64,000 nt of DNA, taken from assembly GCA_002811645.1 (NCBI GenBank), contig PDIP01000010.1:1-64000 (forward strand), given 5' to 3'. The notes under the pieces are model-generated. The model was not told where the DNA came from. It saw only the letters and a list, made by a program, of their open reading frames with translations, and ran no database searches. Of the stretch, positions 6,837 through 50,091 are shown in pieces. This DNA is from Corallochytrium limacisporum Hawaii. Lineage: Eukaryota; Protista; Pluriformea. Within the stretch, counting starts at the first letter, position 1. Every line of letters begins with the position of its first letter. The position numbers were made by a program, and so were the translations under genes.

Positions 6837-7062
6837 NNNNNNNNNNNNNNNNNNNNNNNNNNNNNNNNNNNNNNNNNNNNNNNNNNNNNNNNNNNNNNNN
6901 NNNNNNNNNNNNNNNNNNNNNNNNNNNNNNNNNNNNNNNNNNNNNNNNNNNNNNNNNNNNNNNNNNNNNNNNNNNNNNNNNNNNNNNNNNNNNNNNNNNN
7001 NNNNNNNNNNNNNNNNNNNNNNNNNNNNNNNNNNNNNNNNNNNNNNNNNNNNNNNNNNNNNN
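6837..7062. other. Assembly gap (N run) flanked by G homopolymers
   Basis: Run of N bases. Confidence 1.
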
Positions 7063-37074: not shown

Positions 37075-37159
37075 NNNNNNNNNNNNNNNNNNNNNNNNNN
37101 NNNNNNNNNNNNNNNNNNNNNNNNNNNNNNNNNNNNNNNNNNNNNNNNNNNNNNNNNNN
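37075..37159. other. Assembly gap whose two flanks are near-identical (probable contig overlap)
   Basis: 'gagccgtttcc...cccagcgccaatttttctatt' occurs both at 37021-37074 and from 37160 onward. Confidence 0.95.
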
Positions 37160-38160: not shown

Positions 38161-40815
38161 TCAAATGTACTTGTCGGTTGACCCGGGAGGCGGTGCCGGG
38201 GCAATGTAGCCTTCGTGATCTTCCGCGAGCTTTCCATGTACAACATCACTGCCGGGGGAGCGTGCGATGCCATGCAATTGGAGCTTTTCTTTGTGTCGGG
38301 CCTTGCGGCGAAAGGCTTCGAGCGAAAGATTCTCGTCTCCGGCTGCCCGAGGCAAGACACTGCTAAGGTCTTGAGCAACGATAGCACTAAGAGATCTTTG
38401 TACAGTTGGATCAATCGCTGCCTGGGCGAGGAAGCGGTACGTTGCACCATTCAGTGACCATTCTTTGGAGGTCATGTTCATGTAGCCTGGATGGGCATAA
38501 CTAGGTTCAACATTCTGTGGAAGGTGTACCGAGCCATCTATAGTTACGTCTTTGTGGTCACCAAACGACTCGGTGGTGCTGTCCGGACGAAATTCAACCC
38601 GCAGTGCATCTTCCACTGTGAGATATGCAAATGCAGCCTCAGTGATGTCCACGGATGTGTCCGGGTGGTCACGATCTTTGATCCACCTTACCGCCGTCAG
38701 GGACGCTAGGAATCGGCGAATCGGCACGTTACGCTCAGTGCTCCGCCAACGGATCAAAAGGCCGGTTCTCTTGAATCCTTCCGCTGCCTCTGCCATCGTT
38801 CGAATCATCAAGTGCTCCACTCCACGGTGTAATACGCGACAGCTCATCAGAAATATGTCTGTGACAGCATATCGATGGTCCAACGGATCAGGCATCACCG
38901 AGAGCAGTCCCACGAGGCCGTAGTACCCAAACCGATCTGAGACGTGGACTATCCGCGTGATAGCGCGACCTTCTGCTTCCTCCACAGTGACACGCATTTT
39001 CATCTCTACCTCAGTCCGAGGGTCCTTGCAAGCGTTAAACTGATTTGTCCGATCAGTCAGGGAGGCCATACGCGGAAGATCGGCCGGTTCTGGCGCTGCT
39101 ATAGTAATCCTAAGTCCGAGATTCTGAAAGAAGGCAGACAGGTCGCCTTGGTTTTGCCTCAGAAGCTCCCGCCGCTTTCGTTCGTCCGCGTACTGGTCCG
39201 CCCTCCTTTTCGTACCCGTTGCAGCACCGCGGCTTATGGACTTTGCCTCTGAGTGCCGCTGATCGAAGCACCAGCAGCTGTCTATGAAAGCGGTTGTCAT
39301 CTCTGTTGTGAATGCAAAAGATGTCATACCCAAGTTTTGAAAAATAGAGCTCACTTCTTCCCCTTCCATGGGATTGTCGTCGACAAAGACAGCACCTGAT
39401 GCACTTAGGTTGAGCTCGTTGAGAATGTTGTTGACGTTAGTTGATTTTCGGTCATGATTGATGCGATAGGTGGTCACATCATCCCAATTCAAAATCATGC
39501 CGCTGCTTTTCCGCTGCTCAAACACATCAATTACGTCACTTGTCTTTGAATTACGACTGCACAGGGCCACTAATCCGCCCTCGTCTTGAACGAATCGCAC
39601 AGCGCGTTGTTGGATCGCCTTGTGACATTCTTGAAAGTCTAGCTCTGAAGGAGACACCTCACCACAGGCTCCCTTCCACATCGTGTTGTCACAGTCCAGA
39701 ATCATGACCTTCAAAATGGGTTTGTTCACTTGGTGGAGACAACGAAGAGTCTCTAGTGCGATCGTTAGCGAGTACTCCAAACTAAACGCTTCGTGAATGG
39801 CAACATCCCGTTCCCGACTAGTGTGCTGATCGTGAATAGGCTGAACGAGCTTCGCTGTGATGCCAAGATCCAGAAGATTCCTGACGAGGACCGACGAAGC
39901 ATTCCAGAGAATTGGTCCGATCTTGGAGCTAGCCCCATAGTCGAAAGGTACCATAACGAGAACAAAAGCTGATGAGCACTGGCCTAATACGTTAATCTGG
40001 AGTTCGCGTACCCATTCCTCAATCTTAGAGTGAACGTACGATCTGAAGCCAGCCAATGCCTTCCTCTCTAAGATGACATCAGGACACGCATCTAGTTCAG
40101 ACGCCAAGCTATATTTGACTTCTGGGTGTGGAAAAACTAGATCCTCAATACGTACTAGGTTGATGTGGATACAATTTCCACCATCGTCTGTTGAGAATAA
40201 TGTGCCGTATTGAAGGAATTGAACCAAGAGAGCTGTGCCGAGAATTCTACGCTGCGCCCACTCACACAGTAAGCGAATCGTGTCAGTGGCAAACGTGGCA
40301 CCAACACGGCATTCCCCAAAAACCTTCCAATCACTGACTTTTCGATTTGCAAAACTGGACACCGGAATTTCAAGATCGACGGCTGAATCCGAGCCATCAA
40401 TCATTCCCGCCAACGGGGGCGCATTGTTTGTTTCAGCACCGTGTTCTAATAGACTGCTATCATCATATGTCGCAAAGAACTGCACATCGTATCCTTGGGA
40501 TAAAGAAATGCCTTTCTTGGGCCCATAGTCTTCTGGTCTACGAACTTCAAGAATTGAAATCTTTGTTGCGTTGTAATATCTACGTGTATACCTGGCCAGG
40601 TCCGCGGGTTCACATCCAACGGTGAACTCAACATAGGATCCGATAGGTATTGGTGTCTTCGGATTGTCTATAGGCTCTACTAAATCATTGTACTTGAATG
40701 ATACGTGCTGTCCATTGTTGGCATCAACCAAACCCTTATCATCGGGTTCGATAAAGCCCTGACCTAATCGGCGAATCCACTTGCGAACCCTCCCGGTGCA
40801 AACCTTACCCTCCAT
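38161..40815 (-). CDS. Cold-shock-like domain fused to an FkbH-like (HAD-IIIC) glyceryl-transferase/phosphatase
   Basis: N-terminus 'TGRVRKWIRRLGQGFIEPDD...GSYVEFTV' is CSD-like. HAD motifs are 'ILDCDNTMW', 'LCSRN', 'RINHDRKS' and 'FVDDNPME'. The FkbH C-terminal domain has 'LTDRTNQFN', 'SDRFGYYGLVG' and 'FLMSCRVLHRGVE'. Confidence 0.88.
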   Translation of the reverse strand: MEGKVCTGRVRKWIRRLGQGFIEPDDKGLVDANNGQHVSFKYNDLVEPIDNPKTPIPIGSYVEFTVGCEPADLARYTRRYYNATKISILEVRRPEDYGPKKGISLSQGYDVQFFATYDDSSLLEHGAETNNAPPLAGMIDGSDSAVDLEIPVSSFANRKVSDWKVFGECRVGATFATDTIRLLCEWAQRRILGTALLVQFLQYGTLFSTDDGGNCIHINLVRIEDLVFPHPEVKYSLASELDACPDVILERKALAGFRSYVHSKIEEWVRELQINVLGQCSSAFVLVMVPFDYGASSKIGPILWNASSVLVRNLLDLGITAKLVQPIHDQHTSRERDVAIHEAFSLEYSLTIALETLRCLHQVNKPILKVMILDCDNTMWKGACGEVSPSELDFQECHKAIQQRAVRFVQDEGGLVALCSRNSKTSDVIDVFEQRKSSGMILNWDDVTTYRINHDRKSTNVNNILNELNLSASGAVFVDDNPMEGEEVSSIFQNLGMTSFAFTTEMTTAFIDSCWCFDQRHSEAKSISRGAATGTKRRADQYADERKRRELLRQNQGDLSAFFQNLGLRITIAAPEPADLPRMASLTDRTNQFNACKDPRTEVEMKMRVTVEEAEGRAITRIVHVSDRFGYYGLVGLLSVMPDPLDHRYAVTDIFLMSCRVLHRGVEHLMIRTMAEAAEGFKRTGLLIRWRSTERNVPIRRFLASLTAVRWIKDRDHPDTSVDITEAAFAYLTVEDALRVEFRPDSTTESFGDHKDVTIDGSVHLPQNVEPSYAHPGYMNMTSKEWSLNGATYRFLAQAAIDPTVQRSLSAIVAQDLSSVLPRAAGDENLSLEAFRRKARHKEKLQLHGIARSPGSDVVHGKLAEDHEGYIAPAPPPGSTDKYI

Positions 40816-42046: not shown

Positions 42047-43351
42047 ATGGCGGTGGCATCGGAACACGAACAGCATCCCTTTGCTCCTGCTGAGTGGATC
42101 ACTGATCCCAGCAAAGACATTCCTGGAGGTGCCTCCTGGTTTGGTTTGGACACTACAAATTCGAAAGTGCGAAGGGCTTGGGAAACTGAAAAGAAGGTCC
42201 TGGACATGATGCGAGTGCCGTACCAGCAATTGCATGTCCCAGTCAACAAGAAGGAACAGTACATGCACACCATTGAAATGAAGCCCGGTACGAAGGCTGA
42301 TAAGACTCTGGTGATTTTGCATGGGTACGGATCCGGAGCGTGCTTCTGGTTCAAGACTTTGGAGTTCTTCGGCAGCATGGACGGTCTGAAGGTCTACTCA
42401 GTCGACTGGCTCGGAAAAGGTAGCAGCAGCCGGCCGCACTTCCCAACCTGGAGTCCGGAGAAAGGGGAAGCATTCTTCATTGACGCACTCGAGAACTGGC
42501 GCATCCAGATGGGTATCGACAGGATGATCCTTTCAGGGCATTCACTGGGTGGGTATCTCGTCACCTGTTATGCATTGAAATATCCCATGCGTGTCGAGAA
42601 GCTTGTGTTGGTGAGCCCTGTTGGCATACCTGAGAAGCCAAAGGTACTATTCCCGCAGATCAAGACTGCCAAGGCCCGCATGCTGGTTGGGCTCATGAGG
42701 GTAGGATGGGGTATGAACATTACCCCTGGTTGGATCTTACGGTCTGTCACTGAGGCACGGGGAAGATCGATCGTGGACACATATGTGCAAAGCCGGTTTT
42801 TGGGCTTGAAGGAGCACGAACGACAAATCATTTCAGATTACATGTACGCGATCTCGGTTCTACCCGGTTCTAGCGAATACTGCATGAACAGTATTCTCCA
42901 GGCGGGGGCGTACGCTCGCCAGCCTCTCATCAACCGCATTGAAGATCTGGATGCCCCCGTCACATTCCTGTACGGTGAAGTGGACTGGATGGATTCTTCT
43001 TGGGGCGAAAAGGCCCTCGAAGTTATGAAGGGCGACGGTAAGGTCCATACCGTCCCCCGTGCTGGCCACCAGCTCTTCTTGGACAATCCACTGGTTTTCA
43101 ACGAACTGCTCGCCAGTGAGCTGTGTGAGCATTTCCCAGAGATCATGTGGAGCGACCAGACCAGCGAGATATTGCACACGGAACGTGCCGGATTGACTGA
43201 AGAGCAGATGGAACAGGAAAAGGAAATCATTGACCGCATGATCCGCATGAAGAACCCAGACCCTGATGACATGCTGAATCGTGCCCGTAGCCTGGCGGAA
43301 GACGAGAGTCGCAATCGTAAGAGCAAGGCTGCGCAGCAGGTCCAGAGCTGA
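42047..43351 (+). CDS. ABHD4/ABHD5 (Ict1/Cld1-like) alpha/beta hydrolase / lysophospholipid acyltransferase
   Basis: 'LHGYGSG', 'DWLGKGSSSRP', nucleophile motif 'GHSLGGY', 'LVSPVG', 'FLYGEVDWMD' and C-terminal HX4D 'GHQLFLDNP'. Confidence 0.9.
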   Translation: MAVASEHEQHPFAPAEWITDPSKDIPGGASWFGLDTTNSKVRRAWETEKKVLDMMRVPYQQLHVPVNKKEQYMHTIEMKPGTKADKTLVILHGYGSGACFWFKTLEFFGSMDGLKVYSVDWLGKGSSSRPHFPTWSPEKGEAFFIDALENWRIQMGIDRMILSGHSLGGYLVTCYALKYPMRVEKLVLVSPVGIPEKPKVLFPQIKTAKARMLVGLMRVGWGMNITPGWILRSVTEARGRSIVDTYVQSRFLGLKEHERQIISDYMYAISVLPGSSEYCMNSILQAGAYARQPLINRIEDLDAPVTFLYGEVDWMDSSWGEKALEVMKGDGKVHTVPRAGHQLFLDNPLVFNELLASELCEHFPEIMWSDQTSEILHTERAGLTEEQMEQEKEIIDRMIRMKNPDPDDMLNRARSLAEDESRNRKSKAAQQVQS

Positions 43352-43535: not shown

Positions 43536-44195
43536 TTACAGCTTCTGGAAGGCAGCAATATCGGTGGACTGGACGTGGTCCTCATCGGACTCAATGTTCT
43601 CTTGCAGGAAGTCAACGCCGACCTTGGCGTCCTCCACAACACAGGTGATCACCAGCTTCTTGATACCGAAACCAATCTCGACAAACTTGCTGGATCCCCA
43701 AACCAGACCATCGGACTCAATGGCGCGAACGTTCTTCTCCAGCTGAGCCAGGTCAGTCTCGTCATCCCAAGGCTTGACATCGATGGTGATCAGAGACTTG
43801 GCAACAACGGCTGGTTTCTTGCTCTTCTTCTCCTGGTAAGCCTTAATGCGCTCAGCCTTCACGCGCTCAGCTTCCTCGTCGTCCTCATCGTCATCACCAA
43901 ACAGATCGATGTCATCGTCATCCTCATCAGCCGCAGCCTTAGGAGCATCACCACCGTAACTGGAAGCATCCTTCTTCTCACCAGCCAGAGAACCGAACTC
44001 AGCCTTGTAGGAGGTGATGTGTGCGTACCAACGGGCAGCGTTCTCGTACTTGCTGGCATCCGGTGCTCCGCTCATGGCCTCGTAGACGGCAACATCAGCT
44101 TGAGAAGGCGCGTATCCCTCAATGTAGGACTTGTCCTCCAGGTAGGAGTTGAGGTGGGCAAGACCCTGGTCGCTCTTAAGATCACTGAAACCCAT
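43536..44195 (-). CDS. EEF1B: Translation elongation factor 1-beta
   Basis: The probable start is MGFSDLKS at 44195; the ORF-track extension is not ATG-initiated. Contains 'DDDIDLFG', '[10 protein letters not shown]' and ends 'DIAAFQKL'. Confidence 0.97.
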
Positions 44196-44205
44196 GGTTG
44201 ATTCT

Positions 44206-44275
44206 CTGTTAGCACAATACGGAAGGCAAACAATTTTGTTTGTACGTCCTGGAAAATTAGTCTCCAGATCCTTAC
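44206..44275 (-). other. Predicted 5'UTR intron(s) of EF-1beta
   Basis: GTAAGG donor at 44275. Acceptors are ACTAATtttcCAG (44249) and GCTAACAG (44206). A second possible donor GTACAA lies at 44245. Confidence 0.65.
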
Positions 44276-45141
44276 TGACGACTACGCCATAAACTAGCTG
44301 TTCGACACAAGCGTACAATCGCCATAGCGCTTTACAATATTAGGGTTGTAACAAAAAGAACTGCCGTGCTTAGCGGGGTCCTCAATTCCAAATTCCCCGT
44401 GTGGCATAGAGTGTGAATAAAGTGCGACCTTCAGCTGTCTTGTTGTCAAACACATTGCGGAACTCTCCTGCTCGGATTCAGAAAACCAACGCTCACCGAC
44501 CAAGTGGTTCAGTTTGCTGGCCTCAGTATTTAATAGAGGAGCAGTGCATCTCCCAAAGGAAACAGGGCACAACGTGAGGAGCACAACAAGAGACGGTTTT
44601 CACAACTCCCCAGTACTTCCTCCCCTACCGCAGGTAACGGTCGCCCGGTCTTTCGGGAAGGAAACAAAAGGCAGGCGCGGGGTCTCAAAGCCCCTGGCTC
44701 TGGCAAGTGTGAGTAATGGCTCTCCGATACACCCTGCATGTCTTCGTTCATAACGTTGGTCAACAAACATCCAATCAGCATCATCAAGCACACCAACTAG
44801 AGCACATTCCCTAAGCCGTAAGGTGAACTGCTTCTTTTTGTGCGGCACAGTTACATATGTATGCACTGGCTAGCTCCTCCAACATGTATCTCTTGACTTC
44901 CAACCCGACATACCCGCGTATGCATGGGTGTATCCCACACTTTTTCGGCTCCCCTCTGATCTGGCTTGGAAGCCCGACGCACGTGGCTGGGTTGGCCCCC
45001 ACCGGGGGGTTCGGTGGAGGGTTTGGGTCGGGGAGCGGATTCTGGAGGCCCCCCCTCCCCCTCCTAGCAAAAAAAAAGAGAGAAGCCACTGGGGAGCGGG
45101 CGCAGGTTGCAGCGGCGAGGCGGCGGCGCGCGTAGCAAGAG

Positions 45142-49341: not shown

Positions 49342-50091
49342 ATGTGCGAGGATAGTGGTACACCGGGAGTGATCTACCTGTTTACGAAGTATCCTTACCT
49401 TGGAAAGTGCAAAACGCGGCTCGCCAAGGCTGGACTGCAGGAAGAGATCGTGCAGAAGATTGCCCGGGCATTCTTGTTAGATATTTTGCATAAATTTTCA
49501 GAACAGCGCATTCCTGAGGGATGTGACTGGGTCAGGAAAGCAAAGCGAATAGTCCTGTACGCACCAGCAGATGCAAGAGAAGGCTTCGAGGTTCTCCTGA
49601 GAGAGGAAGGAATAGCTTCTCAGTGGTCACTGGCACCCCAAACTGGTGGGTTAGTGTCAGACTTGGGTTCGAAACTTACTGACTGCCTGAAGGCCCATGT
49701 CAGCCGGTTTGGAACAGGCACGGCAGCCATTTTCATTGGGATGGATAGTCCACACTTGGATCCCAGAGTTGTGAACACTGCCATCCGGTCGTGTCAAAGA
49801 GACAATGTGGCATACATTCAACCGGCAACGGATGGTGGGTATGTGATGCTGGCCATCCCGGGTTCAACTGGCGTCACCTGCTTCCAAAACATCCGGTGGT
49901 CGAGTGAGGCAACATGTGAGGATCAGACAGGGAGCATAAAGGAGTCAGGCACAGATTGCAGGGTGCACAATGAGGCTCTCAGGGATGTGGACGATCTGGA
50001 CGATCTTATGGCATTAAAGAGATGGCTTGAGGAGAATGGCAGTCAAGTCGCTCCGCGAAGCCATTTGGCTGTGTCGCTCATCAAATTGTAA
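49342..50091 (+). CDS. TIGR04282/DUF2064 family glycosyltransferase-like protein (GT-A fold, CofC-related)
   Basis: 'LFTKYPYLGKCKTRLA', 'Q..G..SDLGSKL', 'IFIGMDSPHL', 'PATDGGYVML', 'FQNIRWSS' and 'LRDVDDLDDL'. Confidence 0.88.
   Translation: MCEDSGTPGVIYLFTKYPYLGKCKTRLAKAGLQEEIVQKIARAFLLDILHKFSEQRIPEGCDWVRKAKRIVLYAPADAREGFEVLLREEGIASQWSLAPQTGGLVSDLGSKLTDCLKAHVSRFGTGTAAIFIGMDSPHLDPRVVNTAIRSCQRDNVAYIQPATDGGYVMLAIPGSTGVTCFQNIRWSSEATCEDQTGSIKESGTDCRVHNEALRDVDDLDDLMALKRWLEENGSQVAPRSHLAVSLIKL

Follow-up and report, generated by a model that had tools for sequence, protein, structure and literature searches.

The stretch of DNA analysed here (the window; 64,000 nucleotides, positions 1 to 64,000 of contig PDIP01000010.1 in assembly GCA_002811645.1) belongs to the unicellular holozoan Corallochytrium limacisporum Hawaii and contains, on its minus strand, an open reading frame (ORF) of 884 codons plus stop (38161..40815). 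The central part of the encoded protein (residues 161–745) is a complete long FkbH enzyme of bacterial type, in which FkbH_N is followed by a HAD-IIIC phosphatase and then by a GNAT-fold domain, and, as judged from the sequence, the catalytic residues for both half-reactions (Asp374/Asp376 of the HAD site and the thioester-forming Cys659) are intact. We regard it as probable that the gene represents a transferred long FkbH which has no acyl carrier protein (ACP) domain, has had its termini remodelled and acts as a glyceryl-S-Cys enzyme with an acceptor in trans. To our knowledge, FkbH enzymes have one known role, the supply of glyceryl groups to the carrier proteins with which bacteria make polyketides and non-ribosomal peptides. 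A member of the family that appears catalytically intact in a single-celled organism closely related to animals, with a private N-terminal domain and with neither a carrier domain nor a polyketide synthase (PKS) context, raises the question of other uses for the glyceryl thioester derived from 1,3-bisphosphoglycerate.

FkbH Core and Catalytic Residues

The protein exceeded the cut-offs of both TIGR01686 (FkbH; 193.1 bits over residues 366–706, cut-off 146.65) and TIGR01681 (HAD-IIIC; 42.6 bits, cut-off 35.75), and no Pfam family was matched on the whole protein at E ≤ 1. BLASTP alignments with the best bacterial matches were collinear over residues 171 to ~709, residue 171 (at VGATFATDTI) being paired with residues 7–13, that is the extreme N-terminus, of the bacterial long FkbH proteins. 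Because the homology begins at this point, the middle segment (residues 161–345; 39781..40335, minus strand, as are all parts of the gene given below) is an α/β domain of the FkbH_N type, and the first ~160 residues of the protein are extra. The FkbH_N domain is followed by the HAD-IIIC phosphatase (residues 346–520; 39256..39780) and by the GNAT-fold glyceryl-transfer domain (residues 521–745; 38581..39255), in which the codon of Cys659 occupies positions 38839-38841.

The HAD motifs were found at DCDNT (374–378), CSRN (419–422), K457 and FVDDN (477–481), in invariant or near-invariant columns of an alignment with 88 relatives; the columns of D374, D376, T378, S420, K457, D479 and D480 were 94–100% conserved. 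The column of Cys659, which lies within MSCRV, was invariant, and R660, R664, E667, N696, D627 and N591-Q592-x-N594 were also kept in columns of 94–100% conservation. A full-length AlphaFold model built from an 89-row alignment reached pLDDT values of 80–97 across residues ~160–745 and was poor outside this region. In Foldseek searches, residues ~160–520 (FkbH_N and HAD) matched BF1531 of Bacteroides fragilis (3slr; E 1.7e-14, TM 0.69 by target), which was also the single sequence match of the protein in the PDB (E 1.2e-11); the identity to this best structural match is only 14%, its entry covers only FkbH_N and HAD, and BF1531 is an uncharacterised protein. The Cys-bearing domain matched GNAT acetyltransferases (E ~1e-6, TM 0.6–0.65 by target). 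An earlier reading of the letters alone (hereafter the sequence-only reading) had noted intact HAD motifs, an FkbH C-terminal domain with its conserved Cys and a middle segment resembling the N-terminal region of long bacterial FkbH proteins, and all three observations were borne out by the alignments and by the confident model of the core.

FkbH enzymes convert 1,3-bisphosphoglycerate into a glyceryl-S-carrier (PMC7489565). Since all the residues for both half-reactions are kept, the C. limacisporum protein would most likely use 1,3-bisphosphoglycerate to form a glyceryl-S-Cys659 intermediate. The family member OzmB reportedly acts as a bifunctional enzyme, combining a phosphatase with a Cys-thioester mechanism.

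Bacterial Relatives and Origin of the Core

Relatives in prokaryotic reference genomes amounted to ~600 loci, nearly all of them bacterial; one kept locus belonged to a Promethearchaeota archaeon. The best of these relatives showed 34–36% identity and came from Acidobacteriota, Verrucomicrobiota, Planctomycetota, Pseudomonadota and other phyla. The nearest relatives of the FkbH core were all bacterial, at ≤37% identity, and eukaryotic source collections were not represented among the best 120 matches of a core-only search. In all bacterial matches of the nearer group (P0002–P0022, P0052, P0053 and P0057), the FkbH core is followed by a PP-binding domain.

In a maximum-likelihood tree obtained by a quick search from 88 rows (residues 360–710), a split with an SH-aLRT of 100 separated 30 ACP-less proteins of ~590 amino acid residues from 58 rows that include the C. 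limacisporum protein together with every ACP-fused protein. The nearest row was P0002, a C-FkbH-ACP-TE protein (SH-aLRT 89, unstarred). The terminal branch of the C. limacisporum protein is long (1.92, ~4.5 times the median of 0.43), so its exact placement is unsure, and the tree would not pin down the bacterial donor lineage, the relatives being spread over many phyla. The closest sequences, at 29–37% identity, are P0002 and the bacterial long FkbH-ACP fusions of ~700 residues of the Bryobacteraceae/Solibacteraceae type (for example P0008, P0010 and P0013). These are collinear with the C. limacisporum protein across FkbH_N and on through the Cys domain, and share its side of the SH-aLRT 100 split; whereas they start at FkbH_N and end in a PP-binding domain, the C. 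limacisporum protein has ~160 residues before FkbH_N and no ACP. That the FkbH core was horizontally acquired from bacteria and then underwent fast evolution and remodelling appears well supported by these comparisons.

The two closest bacterial FkbH-ACP proteins whose surroundings were examined (L112:10001-14999 and L113:7552-12973) lie outside classical PKS clusters. The neighbours of P0002 encode a phosphopantetheinyl transferase (PPTase), two α/β hydrolases, a GT2 glycosyltransferase and RND pumps, and after P0010 come a GT4 glycosyltransferase and a GT4-thioesterase fusion. Since glycosyltransferases, hydrolases and a thioesterase fusion adjoin P0002 and P0010, the products of this clade are suggested to be glycerate conjugates (glycoconjugates, acyl-glycerates) rather than polyketide extender units.

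Absence of a Carrier Domain

No ACP or PP-binding domain was detected in the protein by Pfam at E ≤ 1. The position that the ACP occupies in the bacterial proteins is taken by a C-terminal tail of 139 residues (residues 746–884; 38164..38580), which belongs to no recognisable family and was modelled, as helices, at low confidence. A hidden Markov model (HMM) built from the C-terminal 210 residues of the relatives (their ACP tails) scored below zero on residues 700–884, and hhalign comparison of the tail with the ACPs of the relatives gave a probability of 0.4%; a degenerate ACP was ruled out on these two results. The lack of an ACP motif, already remarked upon in the sequence-only reading, is confirmed by these searches, as is the lack of PKS or non-ribosomal peptide synthetase (NRPS) genes in the window, the genomic PP-binding and ketosynthase matches being all on other contigs.

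Four PP-binding matches were found in the genome: two on C154, one on C246 and one on C239. That of C246 belongs to a Lys2-like A-T-R protein of 1314 residues, and that of C239 to an ORF of 129 residues which is taken, by its size alone, for mitochondrial ACP. A 4310-residue open frame on C191 with a ketosynthase match and a PPTase domain is interpreted as a fused fatty acid synthase; two more PPTases are encoded in the genome, and no carrier or PPTase candidate was found near the FkbH gene. As the genome encodes carrier domains and PPTases elsewhere, an ordinary carrier may work in trans.

The two matches on C154 are tandem PP-binding domains of a 1489-residue NRPS-like TE-A-T-T-R protein (L014:4135-8604, minus strand), whose order of thioesterase, adenylation, two PP-binding and terminal reductase domains is unusual. 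Very few carrier-domain proteins are encoded in this genome; this one could serve the FkbH enzyme as a partner in trans. A special kinship of its T-T-R part with the FkbH-T-T-R protein P0003 was considered and rejected, the identity of 28% being ordinary for such reductases.

The N-Terminal Domain

The extra N-terminal region consists of a small basic and aromatic domain (residues 1–95; 40531..40815), distantly similar to the cold-shock domain (CSD), and of an acidic, Pro-, Gly- and Ser-rich linker (residues 96–160; 40336..40530), which has no homologues and a pLDDT below 35. An exhaustive phmmer search of residues 1–170 against 1.84 billion representatives returned a single relative, P0051 (33% identity with residues 2–86; E 2e-13 in the pairwise comparison and 7e-4 in the search of the whole library). 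P0051 is a stand-alone protein of 115 residues from the euglenid Rhabdomonas costata (EukProt EP00906, RCo047537); unlike the C. limacisporum protein it begins with a Gly-rich leader and lacks an enzyme domain, and Pfam was silent on it too. A profile word-search for relatives of the domain yielded nothing beyond P0051, and no paralogue was found in the C. limacisporum genome. No other protein in the searched collections joins this domain to FkbH, so the fusion is unique so far in these collections. The literature searched contained no paper linking FkbH with Corallochytrium or describing a eukaryotic CSD-FkbH protein; an annotated "fkbH-like" plant gene is mentioned, with no analysis given, in a Cannabis study.

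The sequence-only reading had assigned an OB-fold of CSD type to this region. The string GRVRKW..LGQGFIEPDD..VSFKY..GSYVEFTV..ATKISI is indeed present in residues 1–95 and agrees with the CSD (PF00313; CspA, Y-box, Lin28) in the order and spacing of its motifs: the first Gly of G-x-V-x-x-W is separated by nine residues from G-x-G-F-I, and PDD, G-x-x-V-x-F-x-V and A-x-x-I come after it. By eye, the spacing G8-x9-G18-x-G-F-I-x-P-D-D matches CspA-type proteins, and GSYVEFTV and ATKISI fit CSD strands 4 and 5. When the alignment of the domain with P0051 was compared by hhalign with 12 bacterial CSDs taken from genomes, residues 6–67 aligned collinearly with CSD positions 3–53, over four strands, with a P of 0.0014 and a probability of only 15–17%. 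The score (21.7) was equalled by one of 300 column shuffles (mean 10.2, standard deviation 2.4), the domain being in this respect closer to the CSD than its shuffles. A home-made CSD HMM, run with the HMMER filters off, gave 5.7 bits for the C. limacisporum domain (P ~1e-3) and 0.6 bits for P0051 (P ~0.04), at the same motifs. Language-model features (Atlas) of residues 1–95 gave best clusters at 0.91 with 175–180 features in common, and CSD clusters made up 20 of the 30 matches; the 170-residue piece gave 0.89. These signals are not mutually independent.

Several results weigh against a CSD. PF00313 (gathering threshold 27 bits) was not matched at E ≤ 1 on the whole protein, nor at E ≤ 10 on residues 1–100 or 1–170. 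The two-sequence alignment of the domain, used as a profile against the PDB, returned no match, nor did residues 1–170 against PHROGs, and tblastn of the region against phages gave nothing useful. AlphaFold reached a pLDDT of 53 for residues 1–110 alone (two-sequence alignment) and below 35 for this region in the full-length model, both runs placing a helix at residues 7–18, where the CSD has strand 1; residues 1–155 being modelled at unusable confidence, these N-terminal models would carry no weight for or against the fold, and the structure prediction asked of the whole protein is confident for the core only. In comparison with the CSD, eight residues are inserted ahead of strand 3, the loop between strands 4 and 5 is longer, and the aromatics of RNP1 and RNP2 are partly replaced. 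RNP1 reads L-G-Q-G-F-I instead of K-G-F-G-F-I, so that one of the two Phe is kept and the first is changed to Gln, and the RNP2 region reads V-S-F-K-Y instead of V-F-V-H-F; the Trp is off by one position. On balance, residues 1–95 are somewhat better described as CSD-like than otherwise, and the label "cold-shock domain" appears reasonable as a statement of weak, remote similarity; the motif string stands, and the fold itself is not established.

A six-frame PF00313 search of the 24.1-Mb genome, in which only the best candidates were scored, gave at best 17 bits (E 0.1) at C39:10945-11058. Canonical cold-shock, Y-box and Lin28-type domains may be absent from this genome or highly divergent in it.

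Proposed Activity and Alternative Explanations

In the explanation that we favour, a long FkbH enzyme would have been acquired by horizontal transfer from the clade of bacterial FkbH proteins that carry a fused acyl carrier domain. Fast evolution would have followed the transfer, leaving no ACP and an unrelated 139-residue tail in its position, together with the gain of a basic N-terminal domain of ~95 residues and a 65-residue linker. By analogy with FkbH/OzmB chemistry, the enzyme would take 1,3-bisphosphoglycerate, the HAD site would remove the 3-phosphate and a glyceryl-S-Cys659 thioester would form, from which the glyceryl group may be passed in trans to a thiol or hydroxyl acceptor, either a carrier domain, such as those of the C154 TE-A-T-T-R protein, or a small molecule. 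In the least secure step of this scheme, the N-terminal domain, most likely a divergent CSD-like small β-barrel, would recruit an anionic partner (nucleic acid or protein). Of the suggestion in the sequence-only reading that a horizontally acquired enzyme had found a new partner, the bacterial origin of the core and the presence of an N-terminal domain found in no other FkbH hold, and the identification of that domain as a CSD is weak. The case would be a clean example of a bacterial gene remodelled after its transfer to a eukaryote, with the ACP absent and new modules at the termini.

The protein shares with the FkbH/OzmB-type enzymes (TIGR01686; methoxymalonyl-ACP, tetronate and glyceric-acid starter pathways) the HAD-IIIC phosphatase and the GNAT-fold Cys domain, and it differs from them in its eukaryotic host, in the lack of an ACP in cis or adjacent and of a PKS/NRPS context, in the extra N-terminal domain and C-terminal tail, and in changed conserved positions. 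The last of these count against the proposed activity. At 26 of the 78 positions that are ≥80% conserved in the relatives a different residue was found, including W454H, P493Q, R599P and G663H. The RxxGxG loop of GNAT folds binds the pyrophosphate of pantetheine; G663H affects the first glycine of this loop, which reads RVLHRG. Given these changes, the use of the acceptor may have shifted or the activity may have dropped. In the same direction point the absence of genomic PP-binding or ketosynthase matches on the FkbH contig and exact-protein look-ups for expression or biochemical evidence, which returned no record.

A carrier-free enzyme is a less probable alternative which still deserves serious attention. 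The glyceryl group of glyceryl-S-Cys would then be handed to CoA, to a sugar, to a lipid hydroxyl or to water, so that 1,3-bisphosphoglycerate would be turned into glyceryl-CoA, into a glycerate ester or simply into free glycerate. Both the lack of an ACP in cis or nearby and the replaced glycine of the pantetheine loop would be expected of such an enzyme, and glycerate conjugates are plausible products since the bacterial relatives of the same clade adjoin glycosyltransferases, a GT4-thioesterase fusion and α/β hydrolases, not PKS genes; the divergent neighbour of the FkbH gene is likewise an α/β hydrolase, with an intact GHSLG motif. However, the fused ACP is still used by every examined relative of the clade, the hydrolase beside the FkbH gene shows no specific kinship with those flanking P0002, and eukaryotic gene order seldom reflects function.

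It is unlikely that the transferred gene is a decaying relic in which FkbH activity has been lost and the N- and C-terminal extensions represent read-through of once non-coding DNA. Such decay could account for the very long terminal branch, for the alteration of one third of the conserved positions and for extensions that are almost without homologues and are modelled at low confidence; on the other hand, an open frame of 884 codons is highly unlikely without selection, all known catalytic residues are kept and the codon use is native. Moreover, random read-through as the source of the N-terminal domain is ruled out by its relative P0051, which belongs to another eukaryote.

Quite improbable, finally, is the idea raised by the sequence-only reading, an RNA-binding CSD coupled to an FkbH part that senses 1,3-bisphosphoglycerate, and with it glycolytic flux, or that glycerylates RNA or an RNA-bound protein: in its favour are the weak CSD-like signals and the stretch GRVRKWIRRLG with its five basic residues, along with Trp13 and Phe21, which P0051 conserves, but the N-terminal fold is unproven, several nucleic-acid-binding aromatics of the CSD are replaced, the neighbourhood contains no particular pointer to RNA metabolism, and we know of no FkbH-family member that acts on RNA or is coupled to flux in this way. 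The specific version in which a nucleic-acid-binding CSD delivers the charged glyceryl-S-Cys enzyme to its target, RNA or a protein bound to RNA, is very improbable; if true, an RNA-directed enzyme would mean glycerylation of a non-carrier acceptor or a coupling of RNA binding to glycolytic flux. The practical value of the case is, for now, modest, and the link to RNA is at present a weak similarity.

The Gene and Its Genomic Setting

The ORF is a real, nuclear, intron-less and single-copy gene. A stop codon is present in frame 8 codons 5′ of its first ATG, and a six-frame search of the whole assembly recovered this ORF as the sole FkbH-type sequence (TIGR01686, 196 bits). Its GC content (0.50), GC3 (0.51) and codon-usage correlation (0.59) are all inside the range of the neighbouring genes, and its codon use is native.

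The gene is linked without gaps to those of an α/β hydrolase, eEF1-beta (eEF1B), a CCHC protein, malate dehydrogenase (MDH) and an SMC protein, and the contig also bears genes for α-tubulin, ETF-QO, a WD40 protein and GPAT; the eukaryotic setting proposed in the sequence-only reading is evident from this content. The eEF1B gene (43536-44318), which encodes the eukaryote-specific acidic region, is only 2.7 kb from the FkbH gene. A run of 85 N (37075-37159) is found on the 3′ side of the FkbH gene, outside the ORF, 1 kb past its stop codon and before the GPAT gene; since it separates these two genes, a neighbourhood "GPAT-FkbH-ABHD" crosses an assembly gap. A bacterial contaminant contig or a chimeric join was ruled out by the gap-free link to eEF1B, the position of the N-run outside the ORF and the native codon use.

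The α/β hydrolase of 434 residues (42047-43351, plus strand), with the GHSLG nucleophile motif, is divergent from the FkbH gene across a spacer of 1.2 kb. Its co-transfer with FkbH was considered and rejected, the similarity to the hydrolases beside P0002 (25% identity over 119 residues) and the PDB matches being only generic.

A second scaffold-gap N-run was found in the window at 6837-7062. A second gene of prokaryotic type is located ~8.5 kb from the FkbH gene, amid eukaryotic housekeeping genes: an ORF of 249 residues (49342-50091, plus strand) that matches DUF2064, a family described as "conserved in bacteria", with an E value of 6e-16.

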